This document shows, piece by piece, positions 24,001 through 64,000 of a stretch of DNA of 64,000 bases; position 1 is the first letter of the stretch; every line of letters begins with the position of its first letter. This DNA comes from Macrostomum lignano (Eukaryota): contig NIVC01000356.1 in assembly GCA_002269645.1 (NCBI GenBank), forward strand, positions 434,001 to 498,000, in the 5' to 3' direction. Below the pieces are notes generated by a model. The model saw only the letters and a list, made by a program, of their open reading frames with translations, was not told the DNA's origin and did not search any database. A program made the translations under genes and the position numbers.

Positions 24001-24637
24001 CTTGCTAGTGTCTATGGCCAGACGATTTGCTAATGTCTATGGCCAGACTACTCACTAATGTCTATGGCCACACTATTTGCTAAGTCTATGGCCAGACTAC
24101 TTGCTAATGTCTATGGCCAGACGATTTGCTAATGTCTATGGCCAGACTACTTGCTAATGTCTATGGCCAGGCTACTTGCTAATGTCTATGGCCAGGCTAC
24201 TTGCTAATGTCTATGGCCAGGCTACTTGCTAATGTCTATGGCCAGGCTACTTGCTAATGTCTATGGCCAGGCTACTTGCTAATGTCTATGGCCAGGCTAC
24301 TTGCTAATGTCTATGGCCAGGCTACTTGCTAACGTCTAGGACCAGGCTACTTGCTTATGTCTAGGCTATGTTCCTTTTATATCTATGACTAGGCTGTGCC
24401 TATTTATGTCTACAGTTAGGCTATGGGCTTATTTCTATGACTAGGCTTTGTGCCTATTTCTATCCATTATGAGTAATTTGCCAAACAAATTACCTCGTAT
24501 CCTTCATAAACCAAATAGACTCGAAATCCGCAGTAGATGCCCATTCTAACTGTGGCTCGAATTGCCGGATTCATGCCCTGCGAGTCGCCGCCAGAAGTGA
24601 GCACAGCCAGGGCGGGACGTTCACCCTGCGGCAGCAT
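15088..24637 (-). CDS. PFK: ATP-dependent 6-phosphofructokinase, eukaryotic two-lobed type, ~817 aa, 7 coding exons
   Basis: Exons 24494-24637, 23675-23894, 22530-22906, 20802-21169, 19860-20208, 17373-17934, 15088-15521 total 2454 bp in frame. Motifs [94 protein letters not shown]. An acceptor at ~24660 suggests an unlocated upstream exon. Confidence 0.95.
15555..16215. repeat. CTGT/CTGC-based compound satellite with ~59-bp higher-order unit (last PFK intron)
   Basis: gtgtgtcttagtgtcagtgtctgtctgtctgtctgcctatctgcctgcc... recurs at 15801, 15860, 15919. Confidence 0.85.
16865..17260. repeat. 21-bp minisatellite (last PFK intron)
   Basis: Unit cttcagggtggccatgggatc, ~18 degenerate copies. Confidence 0.85.
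17960..19765. repeat. 44-bp minisatellite filling PFK intron 5
   Basis: Unit gagccgttgagagtcagacagagagctgctgacagtcaagaaa(c/t), ~40 highly similar copies. Confidence 0.95.
20560..20760. repeat. 32-bp minisatellite in PFK intron 4
   Basis: Unit ccttgaaacacccactcgggattctcaaat(c/g)a, ~6 copies. A MITE-like inverted repeat (cataagac.gaaa / tttcggtcttat) lies at ~20295-20500. Confidence 0.8.
21270..22510. repeat. 30-bp minisatellite filling PFK intron 3
   Basis: Unit caattaa(c/t)cagctgacctgacccaccaagg, ~40 copies. Confidence 0.95.
23968..24345. repeat. 25-bp minisatellite in PFK intron 1
   Basis: Unit tacttgctaatgtctatggccaggc, ~15 copies. Confidence 0.9.
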
Positions 24638-40820: not shown

Positions 40821-40999
40821 GAAAGATGTGTAATAATTGTCGAGATTTCAAAAACTGTTTGTCTACTAATTATAAGTCCGATGCTTATAGCTTAATATTT
40901 GCTTAAAAATGTACTTACTTGTGTGATCGTGGTAGGGCTTAATTTAATTATTGTCAATAGTTTGTTCATTATTTTGTCCATTCTTAATAAAGTAGAAGT

Positions 41000-42730
41000 T
41001 TCAAGTCCCGATTTGACAGCTTCAAGTCCCGATTTGACAGCTTCAAGTCCCGATTTGACAGCTTCAAGTCCCGATTTGACAGCTTCAAGTCCCGATTTGA
41101 CAGCTTCAAGTCCCGATTTGACAGCTTCAAGTCCCGATTTGACAGCTTCAAGTCCCATTTTGACAGCTTCAAGTCCCATTTTGACAGCTTCAAGTCCCGA
41201 TTTGACAGTTTCAAGTCCCGATTTGACAGCTTCAAGTCCCGATTTGACAGCTTCGAGTCCCGATTTGACAGCTTCAAGTCCCGATTTGACAGCTTCAAGT
41301 CCCGATTTGACAGCTTCAAGTCCCGATTTGACAGCTTCAAGTCCCGATTTGGCAGTTTCAAGTCCCGATTTGGCAGTTTCAAGTCCCGATTTGACAGCTT
41401 CGAGTCCCGATTTGACAGCTTCAAGTCCCGATTTGACAGCTTCAAGTCCCATTTTGACAGCTTCAAGTCCCATTTTGACAGCTTCAAGTCCCGATTTGAC
41501 AGTTTCAAGTCCCGATTTGACAGCTTCAAGTCCCGATTTGACAGCTTCAAGTCCCATTTTGACAGCTTCAAGTCCCGTTTTGACAGCTTCGAGTCCCATT
41601 TTGACAGCTTCAAGTCCCGATTTGACAGCTTCAAGTCCCGATTTGACAGCTTCAAGTCCCGATTTGACAGCTTCGAGTCCCGATTTGACAGCTTCAAGTC
41701 CCGTTTTGACAGCTTCGAGTCCCATTTTGACAGCTTCAAGTCCCGATTTGACAGCTTCAAGTCCCGATTTGACAGCTTCGAGTCCCGATTTGACAGCTTC
41801 AAGTCCCGATTTGACAGCTTCAAGTCCCATTTTGACAGCTTCAAGTCCCGTTTTGACAGCTTCGAGTCCCGATTTGACAGCATCAAGTCCCGATTTGACA
41901 GCTTCAAGTCCCGATTTGACAGCTTCAAGTCCCGATTTGACAGCTTCAAGTCCCGATTTGACAGCTTCAAGTCCCGATTTGACAGCTTCAAGTCCCGATT
42001 TGACAGCTTCAAGTCCCGATTTGGCAGTTTCAAGTCCCGATTTGGCAGTTTCAAGTCCCGATTTGACAGCTTCAAGTCCCGATTTGACAGCTTCAAGTCC
42101 CGATTTGACAGCTTCAAGTCCCATTTTGACAGCTTCAAGTCCCATTTTGACAGCTTCAAGTCCCGATTTGACAGTTTCAAGTCCCGATTTGACAGCTTCA
42201 AGTCCCGATTTGACAGCTTCAAGTCCCATTTTGACAGCTTCAAGTCCCGTTTTGACAGCTTCGAGTCCCATTTTGACAGCTTCAAGTCCCGATTTGACAG
42301 CTTCAAGTCCCGATTTGACAGCTTCGAGTCCCGATTTGACAGCTTCAAGTCCCGATTTGACAGCTTCAAGTCCCATTTTGACAGCTTCAAGTCCCGTTTT
42401 GACAGCTTCGAGTCCCATTTTGACAGCTTCAAGTCCCGATTTGACAGCTTCAAGTCCCGATTTGACAGCTTCGAGTCCCGATTTGACAGCTTCAAGTCCC
42501 GATTTGACAGCTTCAAGTCCCGATTTGACAGCTTCAAGTCCCGATTTGACAGCTTCAAGTCCCGATTTGGCAGTTTCAATTCCCGATTTGGCAGTTTCAA
42601 GTCCCGATTTGACAGCTTCAAGTCCCGTTTTGACAGCTTCAAGTTACGATTTGACAGCTTCAAGTCCCGATTTGACAGCTTCAAGTCCCGAGCTGTCAAA
42701 TCGGGACTCAAAGCTGTCAAATCGGGACTC
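41000..42730. repeat. 21-bp minisatellite (~80 copies) with higher-order structure and a terminal inversion
   Basis: Unit acagcttcaagtcccgatttg; two inverted units at 42691-42730. Confidence 0.95.
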
Positions 42731-43019
42731 GGAGCGAAGACTTCAGAACCCTAAAAAAGATCTTCAAGCCGCCTTAATGTCCGCAATAAAATAGTTGCAC
42801 GCCTATGTACTAAATTTATTCTGAAAGTCAAGCATTTGTTCCATACAAAAAATCATTTTATTCGTGTAGGATTTCTTGTAAAATTCACAAGCTGCTTATA
42901 AATACATAATTGTTTCATCAGATAAACTTTAAGTTCTTTAACATTTTTGCAGCTAAAGTTTTATTATTTATTTGTATATTTCCATTGTCTCATATCCTCA
43001 GTTGCTAAACCACCGCCAG

Positions 43020-43866
43020 CCTCCAGATCCTCAGCTGCTGGGCCAGCCTCCCAGAGTGTCAGTTGCTGGGCCAGCCTCCCAGATCCTCAGCTGCTGGGCC
43101 AGCCTCCCAGATCCTCAGGTGCTGGGCCAGCCTCCCAGATCCTCAGCTGCTGGGCCAGCCTCCCAGATCCTCAGGTGCTGGGCCAGCCTCCCAGATCCTC
43201 AGCTGCTGGGCCAGCCTCCCAGATCCTCAGCTGCTGGGCCAGCCTCCCAGATCCTCAGGTGCTGGGCCAGCCTCCCAGATCCTCAGCTGCTGGGCCAGCC
43301 TCCCAGATCCTCAGCTGCTGGGCCAGCCTCCCAGATCCTCGGGTGCTGGGCCAGCCTCCCAGATCCTCAGCTGCTGGGCCAGCCTCCCAGATCCTCAGGT
43401 GCTGGGCCAGCCTCCCAGATCCTCAGCTGCTGGGCCAGCCTCCCAGATCCTCAGCTGCTGGGCCAGCCTCCCAGATCCTCAGGTGCTGGGCCAGCCTCCC
43501 AGATCCTCAGCTGCTGGGCCAGCCTCCCAGATCCTCAGCTGCTGGGCCAGCCTCCCAGATCCTCAGCTGCTGGGCCAGCCTCCCAGATCCTCAGCTGCTG
43601 GGCCAGCCTCCCAAATCCTCAGCTGCTGGGCCAGCCTCCCAGATCCTGGGGTGCTGGGCCAGCCTCCCAGATCCTCAGCTGCTGGGCCAGCCTCCCAGAT
43701 CCTCAGGTGCTGGGCCAGCCTCCCAGATCCTCAGGTGCTGGGCCAGCCTCCCAGATCCTCAGGTGCTGGGCCAGCCTCCCAGATCCTCAGCTGCTGGGCC
43801 AGCCTCCCAGATCCTCAGGTGCTGGGCCAGCCTCCCAAATCCTCAGTTGCTGGGCCAGCCTCCCAG
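43020..43866. repeat. 28-bp minisatellite (~30 copies) immediately 5' of the nuclear receptor CDS
   Basis: Unit cctcagctgctgggccagcctcccagat; the same unit recurs at 48646-48760. Confidence 0.95.
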
Positions 43867-43915
43867 GTTGCCAGTCAAGCGCTGCAATCGCACTATCCTA
43901 ACTATTGTTTTTCCC

Positions 43916-45859
43916 ATGCCAAAGCAACGCGAATCAAAGCAGCAAGCCTGGCGGCTTCAGAAGCGCCAGCAGTCTGAGCTGAGTGAGCTGGCGGATGCTC
44001 AGCAACAGCAGCCGCAGGGGGAGGCAGGCTCAGTCTGCTCCGTGTGCGGCTGCGACAGGCCAGCGGGCTGCCATTACGGCGCGGTGACCTGCCACGCCTG
44101 CAAGTCGTTTTTCAAGCGCACAGTGCAACACTCGCTGGCCTACGCCTGCATGCGGCTGGCCCGCCACTGCGCTCTCGTGTCCGAGCGGACTCGCGCCTGC
44201 GGCTACTGCCGATTCAGGAAATGCCTTCGCGTCGGGATGCGGCCCCAGCTGGTTAGGTCGTTGAGCGACTGTGTCAACGACGATCAGGATCAGGCATCGT
44301 CTTTGGCCTCATCGACCGCCACCGTCGCTGCCGCAGCCGCCGCCACTCCGTCTGTGGAAGCCGCGGTCGCTGCAGTTGAGGCCGATCTGGTCGAGATTGA
44401 GCCGTTCACCATTGATCAGTCCGGCCTGGACGGACTGCCATTGGAGGAGCGGGTCATCCGGTGCGTCACTCTGGCCTGTGACGGATTTTTAAGCTCTCTG
44501 ATTGTCTGGGCCAAGCGAGTGTCTGGCTTCAATCAGCTGATCATGCAGGACCGAGTGGCCCTGATACAGCGCCGCTGGATGGTGGTGATGATACTGGGGA
44601 TGGCCCGCAGTTCGCATCCGTACACGGACACGCTGCACTTTTGTAGCAATTTCCAGCTGAGCGAAGAGCAGGTAAGCTAATTGCATTCAATATTTTTATC
44701 TATCAGCTTTTCGATCATATCGTCAACCTGTCAATTTTGGTACCTTGTAATCTTATCAAATTTGTCAGCTAATCAAATCTATCAACCTTGTCAACCTATC
44801 AATCAAATCTGTCAACCTTGTCAACCTATCAATCAAGTCTATCAACCTTGAAAACCTATCAATAAGTCTATCAACCCTGAAAACCTATCAATCAAGTCTA
44901 TCAACCTTGAAAACCTATCAATAAGTCTATCAACCTTGTCAAACTATTAATCAAATCTGTCAACCTTGTCAACCTATCAATCAAATCTGTCAACCTTGTC
45001 AACCTATCAATCAAATCTGTCAACCTTGTCAACCCATCAATCAAGTCTATCAACCTTGTCAACCTATCAATCATGTCTATCAACCTTGAAAACCTATCAA
45101 TAAGTCTATCAACCTTGTCAAACTATTAATCAAATCTGTCAACCTTGTCAACCTATCAATCAAATCTGTCAACCTTGTCAACCCATCAATCAAGTCTATC
45201 AACCTTGTCAAACTATCAATCAAATCTGTCAACCTTGTCAACCTATCAATCATGTCTATCAACCTTGTCAACCTATCAATCAAAATTGTCAACCTTGTCA
45301 ACCTATCAATCAAATCTGTCAACCTTGTCAACCTATCAATCAAATCTATCAACCTTGTCAACCTATCAATCAAGTCTATCAATCGTGTCAATCTATCAAT
45401 CAAATCTATCAATCGTGTCAATCTATCAACAAATCTATCAACCTTGTCAACCCATCAACCCAGGCGAGCAGCTTCCGCCTGCCCCGCATTGACCCCCGGG
45501 TGCGCACAATCTGCCAGCGCTACACGCAGCTCAACGTGACCCCGCTGGAGACAAATCTCTTAAGCTATGTTTTGTTCCTGGAGAGCAGCTGCTACTTTGA
45601 TTGGGCCAATCAGGCCGCCATTGAAGAGCTGCAGCTGGGGTATCTTCGCAGGCTCCGTCAGGCCTGTCGCGGCGGAGTGCGCCTGGGTGTCCTGCTGCAG
45701 CTGCACAACGACTTGATGGCAGCCCAGCTGCTCGCTCTCGGCTACATGGACCGGACACTTAACCTGGAGGGCCGGCCACTGCCGCCGCTGGCTAATGAAG
45801 TTCTACAGCACGTGCTGGCGCTCGGCCTTCCCGTCAGCGAGCCCCACAGATACTTCTGA
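43916..45859 (+). CDS. Divergent NR3-type (estrogen-related-receptor-like) nuclear receptor, ~383 aa
   Basis: Exons 43916-44671 and 45464-45859 (phase 0). C4 zinc-finger DBD CSVC...HYGAVTCHACKSFFKRTVQ...CGYCRFRKCLRVGM. LBD WAKRVSGFNQLIMQDRVALIQRRWM..ILGMARSSHPYTDTLHF resembles ERR [40 protein letters not shown]. Confidence 0.8.
44780..45460. repeat. 30-bp minisatellite filling the nuclear receptor intron
   Basis: Unit tcaaccttgtcaacctatcaatcaaatctg; runs up to the 45463 acceptor. Confidence 0.9.
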
Positions 45860-46450: not shown

Positions 46451-46914
46451 ATATCTCCAGGTAATTTCTAGCTATTCTGACTCCGAGTTCTTATTTTATA
46501 TCCCAATTCTAATATTATTATCGAAATTGTGGAAATGTTTAGTAACTGTTATTTGCAGGTATGTCAGAATTCTTTTATGTACCGGTAGTTACTACTCATA
46601 ATTTCTTCTAGTTTTATTTTTCTAACAGTTACCAATGATCAAAAGAACAGTTTTTATTGGTGTCGTTGTTGTGGTAGTGTAAATACCGTATTAGCATATT
46701 GGTTATTTGCTTTTAACTCCTGTTGTTAATGCTGCAGGAGTTGTTATTGTTGCTGTAGTTCGAGTGTGAATCTTTCTACAGTATTTTAGTGTCGTGCGAC
46801 TTCTCTGCTAATGCTATCTGTTGTTTACCGATTGTTGTGAGCTGCGATGCTTTGAGGCTGTGTGCATTGATTTGTACTTTTACTAATAATTTTGCCGCGA
46901 TGCACGGGCAATTT

Positions 46915-47630
46915 CTGTGTGCTGCCACCCCATCTCTATTCCTCCGTGTGCTGCTACCCCCAACCTCTATCCCTCTGTGTGCTGCTACCCCACTCCAATA
47001 TCCCTCTGTGTGCTGCTACCCCACTCCAATATCCCTCTGTGTGCTGCTACCCCACTCCAATATCCCTCTGTGTGCTGCTACCCCACTCCAATATCCCTCT
47101 GTGTGCTGCTACCCCACTACAATATCCCTCTGTGTGCTGCTACCCCACTCCAATATCCCTCTGTGTGCTGCTACCCCACTACAATATCCCTCTGTGTGCT
47201 GCTACCCCACTCCAATATCCCCCTGTGTGCTGCTACCCCCAACCTCTATCCCTCTGTGTGCTGCTACCCCCAACCTCTATCCCTCTGTGTGCTGCTACCC
47301 CCAACCTCTATCCCCCTGTGTGCTGCTACCCCCAACCTCTATCCCTCTGTGTTCTGCTACCCCCAACCTCTATCCCTCTGTGTGCTGCCACCCCCAACCT
47401 CTATCCCTCTGTGTGCTGCTACCCCCAACCTCTATCCCTCTGTGTGCTGCTACCCCCTAACCTCTATCCCCCTGTGTGCTGCTACCCCCAATCTCTATCC
47501 CTCTGTGTGCTGCTACCCCGTCTCTATTCCTCCGTGTTCTGCTACCCCCAACCAGCCAACCTCTATCCCTCTGTGTGCTGCTACCCCACTCCAATATCCC
47601 TCGGTATGCTGCTACCCCACTCCGATATCT
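46915..47630. repeat. 31-bp minisatellite with two variant blocks
   Basis: ctgtgtgctgctaccccactccaatatccct, then ctgtgtgctgctacccccaacctctatccct. Confidence 0.9.
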
Positions 47631-47944
47631 TTCGGTACCCTTTAAGCTTCTCTGTTTGAATTTTAAGCCGTGAATATGCCTGTCTACTTTGCTTTTATGT
47701 TTGCTTGTAGGTTTCTTGTCTTACTTTCTGACTCTGTGGACCATAATGTGAAACTATAAATAAGTAAATATCTCATATGAAGAACTGGATTCTTTTTTTT
47801 CTATCTGTATTTAAAACAAACAATTTCTAAATAATAATGTGTGCAATTGAACCACTATATTTAAATGGAATTTGCTTTGAAGCCTATTTTATAGAAACAT
47901 TTCTTTCTTATATATTAAATTCTAAGTCAGCTGTATCTAGATGG

Positions 47945-48485
47945 CAGTGTGTGGAACCCGTGAAGTGGCAGTGTGGGGGAACCGGTGAGATGGTGTGGGG
48001 GAACCGGTGAGATAGCAGTGTGGGGGAGCCGGTAAGATGGAAGTATGAGGGAACCGGTGAGATGGTGTGGGTGAACCAGTGAGATAGCAGTGTGGGGGAA
48101 CAGGTGAGATGGCAGTGTTGGAGAACCGGTGAGATGGCAGTGTGGGGGAACAGGTGAGATGGCAGTGTGAGGAAACAGGTGAGATGGCAGTGTGGGGGAA
48201 CCGGTGAGATGGCAGTGTGAGGAAACAGGTGAGATGGCAGTGTGAGGAAACAGGTGAGATGGCAGTGTGAGGGAACCGGTGAGATGGCAGTGTTGGAGAA
48301 CCGGTGAGATGGCAGTGTTGGAGAACCGGTGAGATGGCAGTGTGAGGGAACCGGTGAGATGGCAGTGTGGGGGAACAGGTGAGATGGCAGTGTGGGGGAA
48401 CCGGTGAGATGACAGTGTGGGGGAACCGGTGAGATGACAGTGTGGGGGAACCGGTGAGATGACAGTGTGGGGGAACCGGTGAGAT
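47945..48485. repeat. 25-bp minisatellite
   Basis: Unit ggtgagatggcagtgtgggggaacc, ~21 copies. Confidence 0.9.
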
Positions 48486-48518
48486 TGCAGACTGCAGGAT
48501 AACCAAACACCCCTGCAG

Positions 48519-49563
48519 TTTCAGTTGCGGATGTCGGCCAATCAGCAACACTGGGAGGCGATGCGGCGGGAGCGTCAGTTCCAGCGTCGGGCCTTTGCGC
48601 AGCAGAAAATGCAGGTGCGTTCGATCTGGTTGATTTTTCTGATTGTCTCCCAGATCCTCAGTTGCTGGGCCAGCCTCCCAGATCCTCAGTTGCTGGGCCA
48701 GCCTCCCAGATCCTCAGTTGCTGGGTCAGCTTCCCAGATCCCCAGTTGCTGGGTCAGCTGTAACATTTGATTTAGTCAACATTTGCCTGGTCAATTTATC
48801 CACATTATACAGCTAGATAGCTAGCATTGCTGAGTCAAACTTGCTATTCATATACATCTATTTGATCAGGCCGCCGGCTCGGACCCGTCAATGAAGGGCA
48901 CCTTGGACAGCGAGTTGCGCGCCCAACAGCAGGCTTTAGACGCGGCGACCAGGCGACACGCCGAGCTGACGGCCGACGCTGCCGCCACCGCCAGTGGCGC
49001 CGACGCGACTGCCGAGTCTTCGGCTAAGCTGCCGCGCCGTTTCACGGTGGGTTGCTGAATTATACTACTTAATAGGTTCTGCTTATACTACTAATTGGTC
49101 GTCTTAAATGTGTTTTCTGATCGCAAGCGTAGGGTCCTCACTATTTAGGTCCTGACGATCGGCTCATGCGGTAAACGCAGCTGACTCTCGCGCCACGACT
49201 AAGGTTCGAGGTTCGATTCTGTGCACGGCTACATTAATTTGGTACTTGTGCAGGAAACTTGAACAACCCCCAAGGAATAGAGTGTACACATGCCCGACGG
49301 TCAGGGCCTCTGTGTATGAGTGCGTGCCTGTGTACAGTACTGGTGCGCTTGTATGTGCTCAGGATCAGCGAAATGGGCAGAATCACCTCAGCACAGAGAA
49401 GTGGCAAACTGTGCTACTAAAAGTAGAAACATAGGCTTTTATGCAAATAGTTATTAAATTTTCATTTCCAGTCGATCAACTACGCCCAGCAGTGGTGACC
49501 GATGTGCGATGGATCTCTGAAGACGTGACGGACGAGATCGAAAATAAAAGCATGACAGACTAA
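48519..49563 (+). CDS. Uncharacterised spliced protein, helical/coiled-coil-like; 5' end and final frame uncertain
   Basis: GC-rich exons 48519-48614 (FQLRMSANQQHWEAMRRERQFQRRAFAQQKMQ) and 48870-49046 (AAGSDPSMKGTLDSELRAQQQALDAATRRHAELT...LPRRFT) join in phase 0. The terminal exon begins at 49472. Confidence 0.6.
49145..49430 (+). mobile_element. tRNA-derived SINE-like element (intronic)
   Basis: Pol III A-box-like cggctcatgcggtaaacgc (~49160) and B-box ggttcgattc (~49210). No complete cloverleaf. The 3' extent is approximate. Confidence 0.5.
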
Positions 49564-51700: not shown

Positions 51701-52649
51701 TTGTATCGAATAATTGACCGCTTAAGATTGACTAAACAACTCTGGTGCAGAAATTCTTGTATTAAAACAACAAGCTTGGAGAAGGCTTTTTATTAAATCA
51801 GTTCTATTATTTGCGCCAATCAATAAGTGTGTTGCTGTAAGTAAATTTTTTTATGTCTGTTAAACTGGCATTCGTTGTCGCATCGTTTTGGGATTGGGCC
51901 AGCAGTTAAAAAGGAGTGCGTCTAAGCGTCTTGATTGACCAGAACTTACTTAGCGCTAGTATTCAAATTGAAATTGGTTCTGTTATTATGATGCATACAA
52001 ACAAAACCAACTTCTCGCATTTGACACAGATTTTTAAATCTAAAACTTTACCTGTGGCTGTGATTGTACGAATCACGCCAGAAAAAACTCGCACCCTTTT
52101 AAATGTGGCTAATTAAGGCAATTATTCAACTGCTTGCCGTACCCTGTACGTACATGCGGCTTGTGTTAGCCCTGATTGTTTGTTATAATTGTTACTTCCA
52201 TTGTTTTATTGATTATTTTTAAAGCGTTAAAAAGGCCTACTTTACTGAGCTATATAGCTAGCAAGCTGGAACCCGAGTCATTAATTAACTCATTTCTGAT
52301 TTCTGAATATATATTTCAAATTTTTTAGAACATTATATTACATTGTGAGCGGAGAAATCGTTATATATATAAAATAAGATCGTTATATATATAAAATAAC
52401 GATCCGATAGCACGGAGTCGTAAACATGGGTGTATTAAATTAAAGAAAAACTCAAACCCGACTACAGACGGAGATAAGATAAGCCTGCCGAATGAAAGAT
52501 ATTCGTTTTTTCCTACTGTTTCAAATCTTCGTCAGTTGCCCTCACTGACACTTCATGTACAAGCTTGACTATGTCCTTGCTATTGCTTCGAGCTATACTG
52601 CTGATGGCAGATCGGGTATGGTTTTAAGTTCCAGTTTAAGTCTCCAGTG

Positions 52650-53165
52650 GTCCGCCCTGTTCTTTTCCGCTCTTCGTCTGCTCTTTTTTCGCTCCCCGGT
52701 CCGCCCTTTTCTCCCCCCTGGAAGTCCGCCCTGTACTTTTCCGCTCCCTGGTCCGCCTTGTTCTCTCCCCCCTGGTAGTCCGCCCTGTTCTTTTCCGCTC
52801 CCTGGTCCGCCCTGTTCTTTTCCGCTCCCTGGTCCGCCCTGTTCTGTTCCGCTCTTCGTCTGCTCTTTTTCCGCTCCCCGGTCCGCCCTGCTCTTTTCCG
52901 CTCTTCGTCTGCTTTTCTCCGCTCCCCGGTCCGCCCTGTTCTCCCCCCTGATGGTCCGCCCTGTTCTTTTCCGGTTGCCCCCGGTCCGCCCTGTTCTCCC
53001 TCCCCCGTCTGGTAGTCCGCCCTGTTCTTTTCCGCTCCCTGGTTCGCCCTGTTCTCCCCCCGCCCCCTGGTGGTCCGCCGTTCTTTTCCGCTCCCGATCT
53101 GCTCTTCCGCCTCCCTCATCGTCCGCCCAGTTCCTCCACCCCAGCTGGTCCCGACCAGTTTCTCC
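52650..53165. repeat. ~26-bp C-rich minisatellite upstream of MEK exon 1
   Basis: Variable unit ggtccgccctgttcttttccgctccc. Confidence 0.8.
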
Positions 53166-53293
53166 GCCCCTGAACCGCCGTTGCAGTTGAAGCCCAGATC
53201 AAGTTCAATCGATTCATAAGCCAATAAACAGCTTCAGTTGCATTCCGAATCCTTGCCAATCCCAGGAAGCGGACACAGCCAGACGCAGTCCCG

Positions 53294-56026
53294 ATGTCAT
53301 CAGACCAACCGGCGGCCCCGCCAACGGGCAGGAAGAAGCCGGTCAACCTGACCCTGACCGCTACGGTAACCATAGCAACGCCGTCGCCCAGCTCATCCTC
53401 GGGACCGTCAGATTCAGCCGCCTCAACGATCACGTCGTCGTCGGGCGCATTCGCTTCGGGCGCAGCGGCGTCGGAGTCGATAGACGCCAGCGCGAAGCTC
53501 AACGACGATGGCGCCGAGCTAGACGCCAGCCAGCGAAAGAAGCTGCTCGAGTTTGTGCAGCGAAAGCGCGCAATTGCCGAGCTGCGAAACGACGATTTCA
53601 CCGACATAGTCGAATTGGGCAGCGGCTCCTCCGGCGTGGTGCAACGAGTGCTGCACCAGCCCACGGGCCAAGTGATGGCCAGAAAGCTCATTTATTTGGA
53701 GATCAAACCTACTGTGCGATCGCAGATCATTCGCGAGCTGGAGGTGAGCAATGAGCATTGGCATTGAGCACTGAGCATTGAGCACCGAGCATTGAGCATT
53801 GAGCACCGAGCATTGAGCATTGAGCACTGAGCATTGAGCATTGAGCACTGAGCATTAAGCACTGAGCATTTAGAAATGAGAACTGAGCATTAAGCATTGA
53901 GTACTGAGCATTGATACCGAGCATTGAAGAATTGAGCAGTGAGACCAACCTACCCAAATCAATGTCTAACCCACCCAAACCCATCTCTAACCTACCCAAA
54001 TCTCTAACCTACCCAAATCAATGTCTAACCCACCCAAACCCATCTCTAACCTACCCAAATCTCTAACCTACCCAAATCAATGTCTAACCCACCCAAACCC
54101 ATCTCTAACCTACCCAAATCTCTAACCTACCCAAATCAATGTCTAACCCACCCAAACCCATCTCTAACCTACCCAAATCCATCTCTAACCTACCCAAATC
54201 CGTCTCTAACTTACCCAAACCCGTCTCTAACCTACCCAAATCCATCTCTAATCTACTCAATCCCTCTAACCTACCCAATCCCTCTCTAACCTACCCAAAT
54301 CCATCTCTAACCTACCCAAATCCGTCTCTAACTTACCCAAACCCGTCTCTAACCTACCCACATCCATCTCTAACCTACCCAATCCCTCTCTTACTTACCC
54401 AAATCCATCTCTAACCTACCCAAATCCTCTCTAACCTACCCAATTCCTCTCTAACCTATCCAATCCCTCTAACCTACCCAATCCCTCTCTAACCTACCAA
54501 TCCTACCTAAGACTTGCATCTAACCGTCGTGGCTACTCAATCTCAGTGTAAACCTACCAATTCAAACGGTCAATCCCAAATTCCAGGTCCTGCACTCCTG
54601 CAAAAGTCCCTACATCGTTGGCTACTTCGGCTCATTTCTAGCTGACTCTTCCGCCACCATCTGCATCTGCATGGAGTACATGAACGCTGGCTCCCTGGAT
54701 CTGGTGCTCAAGCAGGCTGGCAGATTGCCCGAACCGATTGTGGCCAAGATCACCCAGTCTGTGCTTCGAGGTTTGGTTTATCTGCGACAGATCAACTGCT
54801 TGCACAGGTAGGTGGGCGGAGTGATGCCTAATTAGTGTTGATATCTGGGATTTCCTATTGGGCGATGGCCGTTAAAGAAGATTTCAGATGAAGCAACTAG
54901 AGAAGCTGGAGACTGTGGTAGAGCAATGAAATTACGGATGATGCACAGGAGTGCTGGGAGAATTCAACAGCCTAGGATCAAGTAGGACGAGGAATTGACC
55001 TAGGAAGATTTATCAACCGAGTTTCAACTCCAACAAAGCAGCTCCGTACGCCGCTGCCCCATTTACAGAGACGTGAAGCCGTCCAACATTCTGGTAAACC
55101 TCGATGGCGAGTGCAAGCTGTGCGACTTCGGCGTGTCCGGCCAGCTGATTGACAGCATGGCTGACAGCTTCGTTGGCACCAGATCGTACATGGCGCCCGA
55201 GCGGCTGAACGGCGAGGAATATTCCATCCTGTCAGACATCTGGTCTCTCGGCCTGAGCTTGATCGAAGTTTCCACCGGGCGCTACCCGATCCCGGAGCCG
55301 GACAGCCGGGATTACACCAGCGTTTTCAGCAGCGACCGCCAGCAGAACCTGCTGGACCACCGGGAGGCCGCTGTGCAAGGGAAACCGCTTAAAGGTAGGG
55401 GCTGAGACATTGGAGAGTGGGGTGCATACATGAGCAACCTTGGGAATCACTCGGCCGTTTCTATTGGCAACACACACATTTAAGTCGCTATTGGCTGAGA
55501 GCATTCACGTGACTACTATTCCGTCCAATAGCGACTTACACGTGTGTGTTGCCAATAGAAACGACCGGGTGAATCCCTAGGTTGCACCCAAGCATGGTGG
55601 GGTGGGTGAGGGAGTGAGGTGGGTGAGGGAGTGAGGCGGGTGAGGGAGTGAGGTGGGTGAGGGAGCAAGTGTTAAAGGAAGAGCTGACGTGCATCATTCT
55701 TATGCAAGGATATGCAGCCGATACAAATTCTACCCCTAAAAAATTGCCCGCTCCCAGGCATGAGCGACTCGCAGACCGGGCCCACCCAGATGGCAATATT
55801 CGAGCTGCTTTCCTACATTGTCTACCAGCAGCCGCCGAAGCTGCCCAGCTTCGCCTTCAGCGAGCAATTCTGCGAATTCGTTGACTGCTGCCTGCGCAAG
55901 GATACAAAGGAGAGAACAAGGCTAGCGGGCCTGCAGGAGCTGGAGTTCCCGCGCATGTACGACTCAGACGAGGCCATCTCGCTTGGGTCCTACCTCAGAG
56001 CGCTGTTAAAAACTCCATTGAAGTAG
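53294..56026 (+). CDS. MAP2K1: Dual-specificity MAP kinase kinase MEK1/2 (Dsor1), ~421 aa, 4 exons
   Basis: Exons 53294-53743, 54587-54807, 55069-55394, 55758-56026 (1266 bp). D-domain [93 protein letters not shown]. Confidence 0.95.
53744..54510. repeat. Two tandem arrays in MEK intron 1
   Basis: 7-bp TGAGCA(C/T) array at 53745-53940, then ~21-bp ccatctctaacctacccaaat array at 53945-54510. Confidence 0.9.
55425..55596 (+). mobile_element. 172-bp palindromic hAT-type MITE in MEK intron 3
   Basis: Same family and length as 6850-7021; 8-bp TSD gtggggtg (55417-55424, 55597-55604). Confidence 0.9.
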
Positions 56027-59000
56027 CGGCCGCTTGGATTTTGTTAATTGTGTATGTTAATGAAAGTTGCTGCCTTTCTTATATATCTTGTTTTCTAAAA
56101 ATATGATACCATTTTGCCGAATGGTTTCAAAGTTTCTTGTCCCGCTTTTCCCATGGACAGCTGTAAGCAGAAGGATGCTCGCAGATGGTGAAAATCTCAC
56201 TGGAGTTCAAAATGCATTAGTACTGAGTTCCCGATATCTTCTGGACTAGCTATTTCTCCTGAACTGCTACCGATAACAGGCAGTCGATCAATTTTTTTAT
56301 CAAGGACCACTAGCAGCATATCCTGTAGAGTACGCATTCTGACACACCTATTGGCCAGAAATTATGCCGTCCATACATCTTCTGTAGAGTCAGGATCAAC
56401 AGTTAAAATCGGCCTCCAAAAAATTTCCACAAATCACGAGTGTAGCGTCCTGGTATACTGCTAGTGGTCCTTGTTTTTTATAAGAGGCAGGGTTATGTGT
56501 GCATCCTGGCGCACTTTAAGCGACATTGTCACACGACCGGCGAGAGGCATTGCTGCCCATTCCACCGACTCCCCTGAGCAGGCACACACTCACACTGAAG
56601 TTTACAGCGGCCCTAACGTTTGAGCATTTTGCCGTTGTCTAAATTTACTGCTTTTAATTTTTTCTCGCGATCTACTTGTGAACCAATCTTGGGCGAAGCA
56701 CACGCTTGTTCCCTATGAAACTTGGAAGTCTAGAAGGTGAGACACTGTCAGTGTTCTCCTGCTTCGCTCGTAAAAATCCAGGGTGACCAGGGATAGCCTT
56801 AGCAATTCGTTGTTGCTTCATTGGGTTTCGGATTTTAAACATTAGTTCTGAGTAGCCGTACATGTAGCGCTTATATTAGAGTTTCTGTGGAGTTTGAAAG
56901 AATTTAAAAAGTCCCATTCTATACGTACTACTCTACTGTTTGTAGGTGAAACGTTCTAACTTGTAAGGCTATTTTAAATAAAACAAAATATAATTTGTCA
57001 CAAACTAGAGAGCAAAACATTGGGCATCGAAGTACTTTTAAAGAGAAAATTGGATTGTAATTGGTTTTCAGTGTCATCTCCGAATTTGCAATGCCCCAGT
57101 ATTTTAACAATTGTTTCTGGCTCAGTACAATGCACACTTGCTTCTTTTAGGTCTAAAAGTGCCCCCAGCATATACCGCAGCTCTGTTATGCGCTCTTTTG
57201 TCTGTCTTTTGTCTATCCGTTGTCCAATGCCTATGCTTTATTCAGATCTTTGTCCGTAGAGAGATTGAATAGTTTTTATCTAATTTGACTAACAATTTCC
57301 TTTCTTCTTTAAAATTGCAGCTTTCATTTGCTGGTTATAATTGTAAAATTTTTATGCCAATCGATGACTTCGTAATTTTACCATCAAATTCGTTACATTG
57401 ATCTGAGCTCCAATTGATGCTAAATGTTCCAACATTAATCCTAATGCACTACCATATGAGATCCATATTCAGTCATTGAAATATGACCACAATATGACGC
57501 CATAGATTCAGATTCCACTTGTCAGCAAAGAATTTTCTGCATATATTTAACTCAAAATAAACTTCAACAATTTCAGTAGTGCATAACCCTGCAATGAATT
57601 GTGCTTATTGTTACTGTGTTTAACAAAGCTAAATAAGCAGTACAATTTAAGCTTTATTAAAATTATTTGATAAGACGGAAATTGACAATTACTATAGTAA
57701 GGACTATGATTTCTTTTAAATGAGCTGGAGGACCCTGTAAAGCTAAGGAACGCATATTTATCGAATCTAGTGCATTTAGTGCATTTAAGACTGATCAAAG
57801 TCTATTAAAACATTTAAGAAAGTAACAGATTTTTCACGGAGATCATGTAGCATTGATCGAGCTAGGACTGCACGCGTCTATTATACATATATAGCAGCTC
57901 TGTGTGGAGGCGAGAGCGCCAGAACGGTGCCTTTGCTTGTTGGGTACGCTGACTCTCGTTTGATAGCGCCACTCGCACCCTGCGACAAAAAGCCACGTCA
58001 CGTCGAGTGTAGTGTACGCGGTGAATGTCTACTGCCCATGCCTCCGTTTTACATGTACTTAGTGTTTTTACGTTTTCAAGTGTTTTTACGTACGTTTTAA
58101 TAATTCTTAAATTCCTACTGTATTAATAGGTTTATTATTTTATTTCTGTATACATACGTAACTCCATGAATCCGGTCAGTCGTCAGTCAGTCGATCGATC
58201 AGTCGGTAATCTGCAATCAAGTCCTGCAATCAGTCAATTTGTCAGTCAGTCAGTCAGTCCTTCGTGCTCTGCCGAGGCAAAAAATCACAACGTGCGCCGT
58301 GTTGTACAGTTTTAGGAAAACGAAACATTAACAAAATATAATGTAAAACTGTTACAAATATACTATAGTTTAGTGTAATTAGCAATAACTAGGGTATTTT
58401 AAGTTATATTATAATATTTTTTAATATCGTAACATTTTTAACATAACAAATTTTAACATAAATGTCTTCAAATCTTCCAAGAAAATAAAAAGCAGTACAA
58501 AAACAATATAACTTTGAATATTTGACTCCCTATAGCGAGTGTATCCCTTCAGTTTATGAGATAAAAAGTTATACTTTGGTAACTTTGGATCTGGTTCTAG
58601 AACCAGAACAAGCAATTAGGGCCTATGAAACGCCACACTTAGAGAGCCTCTTCACGGCAATCGATTCCAGAACCAGAATCGGTTCGGATTTCCAAGAAAA
58701 AAAGCAGTATAACTATTTAACTTTGTTGAATGTTTGACTGCCTTAACAGCCTCACTTTGCACAATTTTTCACTTTCTTCTTGGCTATTGCCATTTATTAA
58801 TCAAATTTTAAAGCACTAGTATCCCTCTAGTTTAGGAGACAGAAAGTTATACTTTACAAATTGGTTCTGGTTCTAGAACCAGAACAAGCAATATGAAGAG
58901 CCTCAGAGACACGGCGGCCGCGTCTATAACCTAATCCAAAAACTTATAGAAATGGCAGCCGTGTCTCTAATAGTGCCTAAGACTAGTCTATACTTATAGA

Positions 59001-59749
59001 CACGGCCAGCTCTAATATTATATTAAGCTCTAATATTATAGACCGTGTCTCTAATAGTGTGATTAGTGCCTAAGTTTAGGCCCTATACTTACAACTTATA
59101 GACATGGCAAGTTGGCGACTGTGTCCATACAATATAGAATGCATGCATCTAACACTGGAGACAGTGGCCATGTCTATAATACCTTCATAGCACCAGCAGC
59201 AGTGAGCAGTGTCATTAATATTAAATGGCAAATGAATTTATTGCCACAATTTAAAGCAACAGTAGCTACCATGGTTTCCTGTTGATTCGTCTGCCGCCAA
59301 TTTGTCTGCTCAGCAGACGAACTGGCAAACGAATTCGTCTGCTAGCCAATAAGATTTGAGGAAGAAAAGGAGGGAAAGGGTGATGGAAACCTGCTTTAAT
59401 CTTCTTTTAATGAATGATTTTCTCGCTGTATATAGTATAGGCTATATGTGTAGTGTTATATAGCACATAAATATTCAGAAATTATGTAATACAATATAGT
59501 AACTGCATCTCTTAACTTGATAACTTGATCTCTTGATCTATAAGTTAAAAACAAGTACTTAAATGATTTTAAGCGCCATTTTAACGTCCTCAGTAAAAAC
59601 AAAACAAATGACAAGATTTTATTTAAAAAATCGATAAGTATTTATAAACACTGTTTTAAGAGTTATATAATTTTTTCATTTTTAGAATACCAGATACCTG
59701 TTTCAATACCTATCTACTCTCTTAGCTCCCCTTCTTCTCTTTTCCCGCT

Positions 59750-60870
59750 CAGAGAGGGTGAAAGAGTGGCGACATTGTTGGATGAGAGAGTAAGGTTGAG
59801 TGAGAGGGTGAGTGAGAGGGTGAGTGAGAGAGTGGCAAGAGGGTGAGAGGGTGAGTGGCGAGAGGGTGAGAGGGTGAGTGAGAGAGTGGCAAGAGGGTGA
59901 GAGGGTGAGTGGCGAGAGGGTGAGAGGGTGAGTGAGAGAGTGGCAAGAGGGTGAGAGGGTGAGTGGCGAGAGGGTGAGAGGGTGAGTGAGAGAGTGGCAA
60001 GAGGGTGAGAGGGTGAGTGGTGAGAGGGTGAGTGGTGAGAGGGTGAGGGAGAGAGTGGCGAGAGGGTAAGAGGGTGAGTGGTGAGAGGGTGAGAGGTGAG
60101 TAAGAGAGTGGCGAGAGGGTGAGTGAGAGAGTGGCAAGAGGGTGAGAGGGTGAGTGGCGAGAGGGTGAGAGGGTGAGTGAGAGAGTGGCAAGAGGGTGAG
60201 AGGGTGAGTGGCAAGAGGGTGAGAGGGTGAGTGGCGAGAGGGTGAGAGGGTGAGTGAGAGAGTGGCAAGAGGGTGAGAGGGTGAGTGGCAAGAGGGTGAG
60301 AGGGTGAGTGGCGAGAGGGTGAGAGGGTGAGTGAGAGAGTGGCAAGAGGGTGAGAGGGTGAGTGGCGAGAGGGTGAGAGGGTGAGTGAGAGAGTGGCAAG
60401 AGGGTGAGAGGGTGAGTGGTGAGAGGGTGAGGGATAGAGTGGCGAGAGGGTAAGAGGGTGAGTGGTGAGAGGGTGAGAGGTGAGTAAGAGAGTGGCGAGA
60501 GGGTGAGTGAGAGAGTGGCAAGAGGGTGAGAGGGTGAGTGGCGAGAGGGTGAGAGGGTGAGTGAGAGAGTGGCAAGAGGGTGAGAGGGTGAGTGGCGAGA
60601 GGGTGAGTGGCAAGAGGGTGAGAGGGTGAGTGGCGAGAGGGTGAGAGGGTGAGTGGTGAGAGGGTGAGGGAGAGAGTGGCGAGAGGGTAAGAGGGTGAGT
60701 GGTGAGAGGGTGAGAGGTGAGTAAGAGAGTGGCGAGAGGGTGAGTGAGAGAGTGGCGAGAGGGTGAGTCAGAGAGTGGTGAGAGGGTGAGAGGGTGAGTG
60801 AGAGAGTGGCGAGAGGGTGAGTCAGAGAGTGGTGAGAGGGTGAGAGGGTGAGTGAGAGAATGGTGAGTGG
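59750..60870. repeat. Polypurine-biased compound satellite (GAGAGGGTGAGTG family)
   Basis: ~1.1 kb built from gagagggt, gagtg and gagagtggcaa modules; the + strand is almost free of C. Confidence 0.95.
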
Positions 60871-61796
60871 TCGTTTTTGCAGTCCATTGACCTCATACCG
60901 GTTCTAATGCAGTTCATTAGATTAAGAATGTCTTCAAATTTGCAGGTTTAATTTATTGCCCAAGCATAAATCTATCGCGAGAAAAATCAAGCTTATACAT
61001 GTAAATAGTACGAGTAGCATTAATAAAGTTGTCCAAGTGTGTAGCAATTAGCTGGCAATATAGAGAACAAATCATGTGTTGTGCATTGATAGCGGGGGGG
61101 GGGGCATTGTGTTGCTAAGCCGCTGCTAAATGCATGGTTAGTCGAGACCAGTCGAGGAATTTACTAAGCCTAAGTTCTAGCAATGCTGTATGACGCAATA
61201 TGGTATGTGCAAAGATGCATGGGACTAAACTTGCAGAATAAGAACGAATCAATTATATAATAGAATAGAATAATAGAATAGAATTCTTATAGAATGAACT
61301 CGTACGAACCACCAATTCCAATCCATTTGTAAACAATCAATTGCTTCACTTATAAATTTCACTCACCAGTTTTAGCACGTTAAGTAACACTAAGTCTAAC
61401 TCACACAAAACCTTATTGTTCTCCACGTTGTGTTAGTTTGTTTTGCTTTACTGTTTCGTATTTAGCTTTTATACGAGCTATAGAAGAGAACGAAATGACA
61501 TCACGAACTTATTATGCACCACACATGTTATTTAAGAGCATCTGTAATTGCAATATATTTAACCTAAATCGTACTTACATGAAAGACAAAGCCTTCCACT
61601 GCAATATGTATATCAAATGCCTTAACCTACAGGCTAGGCGATAATAAATCATACACGATGCAAATACATACACTGTAGTACGCATGCCTGTTTTCATTAC
61701 TTTTATAGTTAGTTCAAGATAAAAAATGTGAATCCCAAAAAAGTTATAATGGGATTGAAGCTTGAAAATCACGCAGTGATTTGCTTGGGATAGAAA

Positions 61797-63684
61797 TCAC
61801 GCAGTAGACAATTTGGTGAACTTGGCTGTGAGCTGGGTGCAAATAGTCAGAAGGCGCAGGACGTCAGCTTCTTCGCGAGCGCTGCTCTCGAACTCACGCC
61901 AGGCAGATTGAAGCTTCTCCTCTCGTCGCCTGTAAACTGGCCTCACTCGCCGTGCGACACCGACTGAAGCTTGCAGCTGTTGAGCATGCAGGACTGCCAA
62001 TGTCGATTGCTGCGCCAGAAGGTCCGCCAAAGCATACAAATTCAGGTTGCCTTTCCTGGCTCGTCGATTGAGGGCCAGGTGCCAGCCCTCGACTGAATTG
62101 TTTGTGCGCTCCCTCTGCCTGTAGACAGATAGTTCGTCCAGACTCCAGATACTGCTTGACAGCCATGTCTGCTCCACGTAGCGACACAGCCGCACTAATG
62201 CCTCGGAGTTTGCTGAATCCACCAGAGTTCCGAATGCAGTATAGATATGCGGCGCTGGCAGGTAGATGAGAGCCATCAGCTTCTTGCAAAAAAGCTGTGT
62301 CTCCTTATCGGTTGTGTAGGTCGCGGAAAGGCCAAGGTCTTGGATTTTTCGAAAAATGCTCTGTGCGAAGTGAAATGAGCATCCCTGCAGCTGAGCGTCG
62401 GGGCAGGTTTGATGCAAAGCCTCCCGCATAGCTGCTTCAAAGTCGAGCACAGCTGCCGTGGGTCGAGCTCCTGTCAGCTCGATCAGCCGCTCAAGTACAT
62501 GAACGTAGTCGTGTTTTGATCTTCCAGACATAAGGATTAAGCACAGAGGTACCTGCTTTTCCTTTCCGTCTTGATGGATAAGACCGTGAACTAAAAATGT
62601 ACAGGATTTGATTATTATTTAGTATTAAACGTTTAGTATAGTTGGATTTAGTATTTAGTAGTTTAGTATCAGTAAGATTTAGTTATATAGATTAGTATTA
62701 AAAGATTTAAAGCAAATTAAAAAGTAACTCACCGGAATAAAGCTGCATAAACGGATTTTTAACAACGTAGAATGTTCCATCCATGAACCATTGATTCATA
62801 GTAGTCAGAATCTCCAGTTGCTCATCAGTGGCAAACAACAAATGGCGCTTATGGGTTCTGGCCACGGTGATGTCCGCTTTGAGAAAGTTGGAGTGGAGGG
62901 CCAGCTCTTGAAGTTCAAATCGAAGATCATGTGGATGAGGAGGCTGGCTTCCTGCGCGATATCGGTTAGCGTTTCTAGCCAGCTGCTCAACTGCTGGAAG
63001 ATTAGCGCCCTGCTCACCTCGCAGTGCCTGTGCTATTAGGGCGCTTTCAGCAATCTCTGCCGCTGATTCAAATCGGCATCGCTTTGCTTCGTGCTTCACT
63101 TCCCATTGAATTTCTCTTTTGAGGCCGCCGGCCATGTTGGGCTCGCATATGTGTTGCCGGCTTACATGAAAAGCGCCATCAATTGTCTCTTTAACGGAGC
63201 CGTTACAGTTCAAAGCACCGTTTCGAACCACGCATTTCCAGTATTTACACCCAGCTTTACCTCCATTTCTTCCCAGAATATAACCACGGGAAGATACAAG
63301 CAAATCGCCGCCACGTTCGCTTACGCCCCGCTTTAGTTGAAACTGCTCTGGCTCCACTTGCAAGGGCATTACTTGAGCAGGAAGAGCTGCCGGTGGCGCG
63401 GCGAAAGCTGCTGGTGGATTGTCAAAAGCTGGCAGATCGGCGAAAGCTGCTGGCGGATCGGCAAAGGCTGCAGGCAGATCGGCGGGAGCTGCTGGTGGCT
63501 CGGCGAAAGCTGCTGGTGGATCGGCAAAAGCTGGCAGATCGGCGAAAGCTGCTGGTGGATCGGCAAAAGCTGGCAGCTCGGCGGGAGCTGCTGGTGGCTC
63601 GGCGAAAGCTGCTGGCGGATCGGCTGAACCCAGATCAGAAAACTGGCTTGTGCCAACCTCACCAGCACCATTGAGCGTCTGGGT
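61797..63684 (-). mobile_element. Spliced Mutator (MULE) transposase with FLYWCH domain, intact DDE
   Basis: Exons 62733-63684 and 61797-62590, intron 62591-62732 (GTGAGT..TTTTAG, phase 1). FLYWCH-like LLVSSRGY...YWKC...C.GSV....HIC. Catalytic motifs MDGTF, VLDFE, GCSFH, RTNNSVEGWH. In-frame ATG at 63369 gives 476 aa. Confidence 0.9.
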
Positions 63685-63862
63685 CTGTGTGTGTGAAAAA
63701 TTTGTTATCGCTTTGTACTACGAGATTTACATCAAGCTTAAACTTTGCAGCATGGCCGAAATATCAACAATTACATGTACCGTAGCATAGCATGTAAATT
63801 ACAGTAATTAATATATAATAGAATCCTTCATACTACACAGTAGGTGCTGCCAGTCTCTTACC

Positions 63863-64000
63863 TCATTTTTTTCCAGTGCACTTTGAGCATTGCCAATTAA
63901 AGGAATGTTCCATCAAAGCATGGTATTCCTTTCGTCTCAAACCAGTGCCGCAAAGACGGTGCTGCCATAGCTGACAAGAATCGCACTGTAAAGCATGCTG
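63863..64000 (-). CDS. C-terminal part of a PHD zinc finger (runs off the window), upstream of the MULE transposase
   Basis: QHALQCDSCQLWQHRLCGTGLRRKEYHALMEHSFNWQCSKCTGKK*: the C-x2-C-x4-H-x2-C...W-x-C-x2-C part of a PHD. A GTAAGA donor follows at 63861. Confidence 0.8.
   Translation of the reverse strand, partial: QHALQCDSCQLWQHRLCGTGLRRKEYHALMEHSFNWQCSKCTGKK

Follow-up and report, generated by a model that had tools for sequence, protein, structure and literature searches.

The window analysed here is a stretch of 64,000 nucleotides of the Macrostomum lignano genome (contig NIVC01000356.1 of assembly GCA_002269645.1, positions 434,001 to 498,000), and its right-hand end carries, on the minus strand, a gene for a transposase of the Mutator-like element (MULE) group, in which an exon encoding part of a PHD finger lies ahead of a FLYWCH zinc finger and a catalytic domain of the DDE (Asp-Asp-Glu) type (Table 1). 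Read inward from the window edge, positions 64000 to 63862 translate as QHALQCDSCQLWQHRLCGTGLRRKEYHALMEHSFNWQCSKCTGKK followed by a stop codon, and this peptide corresponds to the C-terminal two-thirds of a PHD finger (C-x2-C-x4-H-x2-C ... C-x2-C). Six of the eight zinc ligands are seen in the window (C..C, H..C and C..C), the first Cys pair being located beyond the edge, and it is because of this truncation that the generic Pfam PHD model gives the fragment only 21.4 bits against a cut-off of 24. The 3' end of the exon reads GGA AAA AAA TGA G/GTAAGA (the slash marks the splice junction), with the last G at 63862 and the donor GTAAGA starting at 63861; the run of A is exactly seven bases long (A7, 63866-63872), and the TGA at 63865-63863 ends 1 nt before the donor. 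The interval that follows finishes in cacacacag, and the next exon opens with ACC CAG at 63684, in the frame of the transposase, whose first ATG (63369) is found 105 codons further on.

Removal of one A from the run (A6) converts the end of the exon into GGA AAA AAT GAG and yields, when the frame is computed by script, a single frame of 627 codons through the PHD finger, a linker, the FLYWCH finger and the MULE domain. This is what the initial annotation had claimed, and its coordinates, the position of A7, the 177-bp interval and the 105-codon count are all correct to the base. The A7 sequence as assembled leads to the stop, and the same computation shows that the 0 frame after splicing stops again 9 codons later. 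Stop-codon readthrough was considered as a rescue of A7 and is ruled out, because with this second stop in the spliced 0 frame readthrough cannot restore the frame. Alternative splice sites offer no rescue either, because the TGA precedes the donor; the sole upstream GT in exon 1 (AA/GTGCAC) would, if used, lose the last zinc ligand and join the exons out of phase.

Table 1. Parts of the transposase gene and an adjacent repeat array in the window (slashes mark splice junctions).
Feature	Positions	Strand	Description
Exon 1, cut by the window edge	63862..64000	-	C-terminal ~41 residues of the PHD finger (ligands C3, C4, H, C6, C7, C8), then TGKK and stop
A7 homopolymer and TGA	63863..63872	-	Sequence in which the extra A sets the stop 1 nt before the donor
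Intron 1, predicted	63685..63861	-	177 bp, GAG/GTAAGA ... TTTTTCACACACACAG/A, phase 0 in the A6 reading, GC 0.35
Exon 2	62733..63684	-	Unique 20 codons; DPPAAFA-type minisatellite linker, 63385-63624; ATG, 63369-63367; FLYWCH-like finger, ~63321-63145; start of MULE with D197, 62781-62779
Intron 2	62591..62732	-	142 bp, CCG/GTGAGT ... TTTTTAG/TT, phase 1, GC 0.21, splits the V213 codon
Exon 3	61797..62590	-	Rest of MULE DDE: D262, 62444-62442; C283/H286 (CxxH); E380, 62090-62088; C-terminal helical region; TGA, 61799-61797
Minisatellite, 1.08 kb	59793..60870		23/46/54-bp units, ~0.9 kb downstream of the stop

The enzymatic part of the gene is divided by intron 2, which is certain at the level of sequence comparison because once it is excised the conserved motif PFMQLYSVHGLI reappears, in register with QLFSVHSFI and QLYIFHGYV of intronless homologs. 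Exons 2 and 3 together have a GC content of 0.53 and the 3' flank one of 0.35, the values for the two introns being those of Table 1. In the spliced protein, the Pfam MULE model (PF10551) matches residues 194-289 with 50.4 bits (cut-off 27.6), and D197 (MDGTF), D262 (LDFE), C283/H286 (GCSFH) and E380 (TNNSVEGWH) align with invariant or nearly invariant columns of the family. Moreover, the window protein agrees with 84 of the 90 strongly conserved family columns (0.93; homologs 0.87-1.00), and the hypothetical A6 protein is collinear over its whole length with 12 homologs that carry the PHD, and both the zinc ligands of this finger and its Trp are invariant. From these alignments, the window copy looks intact apart from the frameshift.

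Homologs were sought with a query of 476 residues, corresponding to the spliced protein from the ATG at 63369 with the repeat linker left out. A first search recovered 19 relatives, and an exhaustive HMMER search of 15 billion proteins recovered 11,003 at E ≤ 1e-3 and 310 at E ≤ 1e-30. The best match, P0001 (603 residues), starts with MNHAACVVCFNDVRRLQQGLQCDECHCWQHRTCGSGISQLEYRALQQLDCFQWRCNNC, a complete PHD finger whose second half matches the window exon, and continues with a Q-rich linker, FLYWCH and MULE. P0001 and P0020, the two top-scoring relatives, share with at least 14 others the N-terminal signature C..C..V..RQQALQCD.C..WQHR.CGTGI...Y......W.C..C; a complete PHD is present at residues 2-19 in 16 of the 167 proteins fetched, and 4 more are N-terminally clipped. 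Among the representatives that cover the start of FLYWCH (n = 76), 15 carry the PHD, 34 lack it despite a long N-terminus, and in the other 27 the N-terminus is short. When 50 members whose N-terminus is long were scanned with Pfam, the scan detected MULE in 48, FLYWCH in 35 and the generic PHD in 6, with other domains appearing as singletons, and the PHD finger, carried by about 19-20 of these 50 members, is the only recurrent accessory domain in the set. For example, P0001, P0003 and P0008 are uninterrupted single open reading frames (ORFs) on DNA contigs, with precomputed assignments to PHD_Pygo (PF27108) and MULE. The named members, all annotated as 'uncharacterized protein', come from Branchiostoma floridae (XP_035686596.1, XP_035663079.1, XP_035670971.1 and XP_035689955.1) and from the anchovy Engraulis encrasicolus (XP_063077820.1); other homologs are found on marine metagenome contigs. 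These comparisons show that the order PHD-linker-FLYWCH-MULE within one polypeptide truly exists and recurs in this lineage of transposases. The profile hidden Markov model search for such proteins, which the initial annotation had put forward together with the architecture itself, thus recovered them, and the architecture is borne out by at least 16 homologs, by the single ORFs and by the profile score of the window fragment given below.

Concerning the anchovy protein (P0083, 1885 residues), it starts with the family PHD and nine stretches of it match the transposase; this gene model probably results from the merging of several tandem or nested copies.

An exon at the edge of a window that stops in its own frame could also belong to a separate upstream host gene of Pygopus or MLL type, hidden beyond the edge and adjacent by coincidence, with the transposase starting at the ATG at 63369, as PHD-less FLYWCH-MULE transposases exist. 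However, when the family PHD is profiled from 14 homologs, the window copy being excluded, the truncated window fragment scores 54.9 bits, beyond what chance would give, against 42.7 bits for the complete human Pygo1 PHD, and the strand, the order and a similar spacing of the parts are those of the homologs. Also, a consensus donor is placed right after the stop, with a phase-compatible acceptor 177 bp downstream. The separate-gene reading, which the initial annotation had raised against its own proposal, is very unlikely and the least probable of those considered here. The PHD exon would very probably be the ancestral N-terminal module of the transposase gene, and not part of a neighboring host gene; in the alignment of homolog PHDs (n = 14), C, C, W, H, C, C and C are invariant and all eight zinc ligands are present.

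The openness of the 105 codons ahead of the ATG is weak evidence for this connection, because about 80 of them belong to a minisatellite of 21/39/102-bp units (63385-63624) in which almost every one of the six frames is open, on both strands. The linker is supported instead by the homologs, every PHD-bearing one of which has a low-complexity, variable linker at the same position. The tandem repeat of the window linker encodes (D/E)(P/L)PAAFA units, whereas the homolog linkers are Q-rich or P/S-rich, and the PHD-FLYWCH linker appears to evolve through repeat expansion.

With respect to the type of PHD finger, the family profile matches Pygo1/2 best among the entries of the PDB (E = 8.4e-11), followed by MLL1 PHD3 (1e-7) and then KMT2C/D PHD6. 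An AlphaFold (AF2) model of the PHD of P0001, and not of the truncated window copy, has a predicted local distance difference test score (pLDDT) of 90.3, and the best fold matches of this model are human and fly Pygo PHDs (2vpg, 2dx8 and 3zpv), with template modeling (TM) scores of 0.79-0.85 and a root-mean-square deviation of 1.3-1.7 Å; MLL3, AL1, BPTF, MLL1 PHD3 and DIDO come next. Several of the matching PDB entries are complexes with peptides of histone H3 di- or trimethylated at lysine 4 (H3K4me2/3), and the entries of MLL3 and MLL4 PHD6 are complexes with histone H4. The PHD fingers of Pygopus and MLL read methylated H3K4. In Pygo1, the cage for methylated K4 is made by W366, Y341 and D352 over V350 and A356, the W366E substitution abolishes binding, and T3 is accommodated among A356, I357, W366 and Y379 (PMC2726290). 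In the transposase family, the equivalent of W366 is invariant and those of V350, A356 and Y379 are conserved, the equivalent of E360 being often acidic (D in the window). From sequence and model, the family PHD may bind the N-terminal tail of H3, probably in a K4-methylated state.

Mobility is documented in a homolog. The ORF of P0008 (6001-7674 of L001, an 834-kb contig of ENA assembly ERZ25072999) is flanked by a 23-bp terminal inverted repeat (TIR), GGTGTCGAGTTGTTTCGCTGCAA at 5204-5226 with an imperfect inverted copy at 8208-8230, and these repeats are bordered by a perfect 8-bp direct repeat, GATGTAAC, at 5196-5203 and 8231-8238. The element measures 3,027 bp, has a 99-bp subterminal tandem repeat at 5590-5839, and is a bona fide insertion because its TIRs are flanked by a perfect 8-bp target-site duplication (TSD). 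No TIRs were found in the short contigs L002 and L003. The TIR motif of L001 is absent from the window, and a reading of 58400-59900 gave no obvious TIR. The minisatellite downstream of the window gene (Table 1) may belong to the element as a subterminal array, although its membership is uncertain, being weakened because the region is unusually rich in unrelated minisatellites. A C10 homopolymer (~61105-61114, minus-strand reading) also lies in the AT-rich 3' flank of the gene.

Phantom, attributed to Marquez and Pritham (2010), is reportedly a subclass of Mutator-like elements. Its transposases combine an N-terminal FLYWCH with MULE (PMC3169594, PMC6446971). The window family likewise has a FLYWCH zinc finger in its N-terminal part and a MULE DDE domain and is found in animal hosts, FLYWCH having been reported from Branchiostoma. 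The TSD of Phantom is 8-10 bp long and that of the L001 homolog 8 bp; moreover, a minisatellite comes after the ORF in some Phantom members, and this arrangement is described for both Phantom of aphids and Rehavkus elements (PMC6446971). Unlike Phantom as described, the window family adds a Pygo-like PHD and a long disordered linker upstream of FLYWCH. Rehavkus elements, on the other hand, are relatives of MULEs that encode a PHD finger and have a minisatellite ahead of the 3' TIR (PMC6446971, bioRxiv 10.1101/2024.12.02.626372), long TIRs and a 9-bp TSD, and they have the PHD finger and the animal hosts in common with the window transposase. Identity with Rehavkus, considered for the PHD and the 3' minisatellite, was rejected, since six published Rehavkus cores gave no phmmer match (E > 10) to the window protein and a Rehavkus profile gave none either. 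The motifs also differ, being D[AS]TGS, CxAH and a long insert before the E in Rehavkus versus DGTF, DFE, CSFH and TNNxxEGWH in the window transposase. Because the catalytic cores have no detectable similarity, the association with PHD would be independent of that in Rehavkus. Judged by its architecture, the window gene would be a MULE of the Phantom type to which a PHD became joined independently, and it does not belong to Rehavkus.

Other proteins join comparable modules. In RAG1/RAG2, also a cut-and-paste DDE enzyme with a PHD finger, the PHD of RAG2 reads H3K4me3 and guides the enzyme to chromatin methylated at H3K4 (PMC5175335); this PHD is located at the C-terminus of a separate subunit, whereas that of the window family is at the N-terminus of the transposase itself and its histone reading is a prediction, and the superfamilies differ. 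The chemistry of MULE transposition reportedly resembles the reactions of hAT and Transib elements and V(D)J recombination (PMC5499845). The PHDs of Pygopus (2vpe, 2vpg, 2dx8 and 3zpv) and of MLL1 PHD3 and KMT2C-D PHD6 are the closest to the family PHD in sequence and fold, but the family PHD resides in a transposase instead of a Wnt co-activator or a methyltransferase, with nothing indicating a cofactor of the BCL9/HD1 type. Also, some MULE-type WRKY-GCM1 transposases have a C-terminal PHD, with classic zinc fingers at the N-terminus (Babu et al. 2006, PMC1702500); they share with the window family the MULE domain, the WRKY-GCM1 fold and an accessory PHD, which in the window family is N-terminal and of the Pygo type. 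The proposal of an undescribed system was therefore overstated, as PHD fingers on MULE relatives (PMC6446971, PMC1702500) and in RAG2 (PMC5175335) are known, and it apparently holds for the exact form, since no description of an N-terminal Pygo-like PHD on a FLYWCH-MULE transposase was found in the searchable literature.

The reading preferred here, held with moderate confidence, is that the window contains a Phantom-type MULE gene with the family PHD, disabled in this copy by a genuine and recent indel of one A. Several points weigh against it. The splicing of intron 1 stands as a prediction from the DNA, since the linker is not conserved and is thus beyond the reach of protein alignment. Pfam FLYWCH (PF04500) gives the window copy 13.6 bits, under the cut-off of 23.6; the finger is accepted despite this score because the region aligns with homologs above the threshold, and it retains the invariant C197, R200, C206 and H224 (numbering of alignment A1). 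The PHD must be dispensable in at least part of the family, because about 27 of the 76 N-terminally complete relatives are without it. The equivalent of Y341 is aromatic in some members only and that of D352 is not conserved (two of the three cage-wall residues), which makes the preference for methyl-lysine uncertain. Gene and element alike have their 5' ends past 64000, outside the window, so that TIR and TSD are undefinable for the window copy. Self-BLAST and tblastn gave no second copy or flank repeat within the window, and no relative above 50% identity was found among the 15 billion proteins (closest ~38-49%); without a second window copy or a close relative, A6 and A7 are not comparable across copies. 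Finally, the remainder of the gene is intact to a degree that makes an assembly error a serious alternative to a real mutation.

In that case, the extra A would be an error made in the homopolymer during sequencing, assembly or polishing, and the true locus would read A6 and encode an intact, possibly active full-length transposase. Within about 627 codons there is neither a further stop nor a further frameshift, the splice sites of both introns fit the consensus, the DDE and CxxH residues are present, 93% of the family-conserved positions are kept, as in intact homologs, and the lesion falls in a 7-base homopolymer. Homopolymers are the commonest site of indel errors in long reads, and the polishing of multi-copy repeats can bring in variants from paralogs. 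However, about 2 kb of conserved 6-phosphofructokinase (PFK) exons and the nuclear-receptor ORF elsewhere in the window have no frame breaks, which suggests, as a weak test, that the assembly is not riddled with indels. Moreover, most copies of transposable elements are defective, mutations concentrate in A-runs, and among real mutations, too, homopolymer indels are the commonest. An assembly error is a possible explanation but a less probable one, and we lean toward the extra A being a real inactivating homopolymer indel in a young and otherwise intact copy.

A third explanation, decidedly improbable, is that A7 is functional. A +1 ribosomal frameshift at AAA-UGA-G, with the P-site tRNA-Lys moving from AAA to AAU, or transcriptional slippage would produce a little full-length transposase, and the default outcome would be a free PHD peptide, nonsense-mediated decay (NMD) of the transcript, or both, throttling transposition. 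The shift needed is +1 at the AAA codon before the stop. The obligatory shifts of Euplotes at AAA-UAA/UAG occur at the same type of site, and +1 shifting stimulated by a stop is found in antizyme and RF2. The rest of the gene is intact, and a moderately stable hairpin is predicted downstream in the spliced mRNA. However, this structure is not significant (z = -1.68, 10 of 200 shuffles folding as well) and begins ~17 nt past the stop, no homolog has a split PHD, all PHD-bearing relatives being simple fusions, and the host is a metazoan with the standard code, as judged from the nuclear receptor and PFK genes; no efficient AAA-stop shifting is known from metazoans. Slimmer still is the chance that an A7-TGA switch sets the ratio of free Pygo-like PHD peptide, a possible competitor for methylated H3K4 or regulator, to full-length transposase; if true, a DNA transposon of a metazoan would be limiting itself through a control that is coupled to chromatin. 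The order of likelihood for the extra A is then real mutation, assembly error and recoding or NMD switch.

Under the preferred reading of a genuine indel in a Phantom-type gene, the ancestral protein would have been one chain made of a Pygopus-like PHD, a disordered low-complexity linker, a FLYWCH finger of the WRKY-GCM1 fold and a DDE/ribonuclease H domain with CxxH. In M. lignano, the window gene would have two short spliceosomal introns, the second verified by alignment and the first predicted. FLYWCH would bind the ends of the element and the DDE domain would perform the cut-and-paste reaction. By analogy with its structural relatives, the PHD may dock the transposase on H3 tails, probably H3K4-methylated, and this docking could bias the landing site or the timing of activity, as the PHD of RAG2 does for RAG1. 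The extra A, which creates a TGA one base ahead of the donor of exon 1, would have split a PHD peptide of ~65 residues from the enzyme. A PHD-less FLYWCH-MULE protein from the ATG at 63369, the architecture of many relatives, could still be made if an internal transcript exists.

The choice of targets in chromatin by DNA transposons is largely unknown outside of the RAG2 PHD with H3K4me3, chromodomain integrases and the tethering factors of retroelements. The lineage described here is widespread (amphioxus, a teleost and many contigs of marine eukaryotes) and annotated as 'uncharacterized', and at least one member looks freshly mobile by its TIRs and TSD. Mutator elements have long been noted to prefer the 5' regions of genes. 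Should the PHD recognize methylated H3K4, the family would offer a natural single-chain analogue of RAG1/RAG2 and a mechanistic handle on this 5' preference, making chromatin-guided transposition testable with a small protein. On the other hand, the fact that the window copy is one base away from the fusion is probably mundane; it illustrates that gene predictors can overlook a domain architecture when a homopolymer indel interrupts it.

Among the other features of the window, a host 6-phosphofructokinase gene occupies 15106-24610 on the minus strand, with at least 6 exons and kb-sized introns, its best identity being ~65% (insects, a rotifer, a chelicerate and vertebrates), which places the source among metazoans of a thinly sampled lineage. 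On the plus strand, a long ORF at 42947-44680 opens with a minisatellite of ~1 kb in coding phase (GQPPRSSAAGPASQIL... units), after which come a nuclear-receptor zinc finger of the C4 type (71 bits) and the first part of a ligand-binding domain. Directly upstream of it, a very regular minisatellite of ~1.9 kb (40892-42794) gives GLEAVKS, SSPDLTA and NRDLKLS readings, several frames being open on both strands. Minisatellite arrays with long spurious ORFs are also located at 21239-21748, 46789-47660, 47908-48551 and 52555-53190. Finally, a plus-strand exon at 53294-53767 encodes a Ser-rich N-terminus and then the start of a protein-kinase domain, with a motif that looks MAP2K-like; its Pfam Pkinase score, 22.7 bits against a cut-off of 31.7, stays below the threshold because the ORF holds only the first ~50 residues of the domain.

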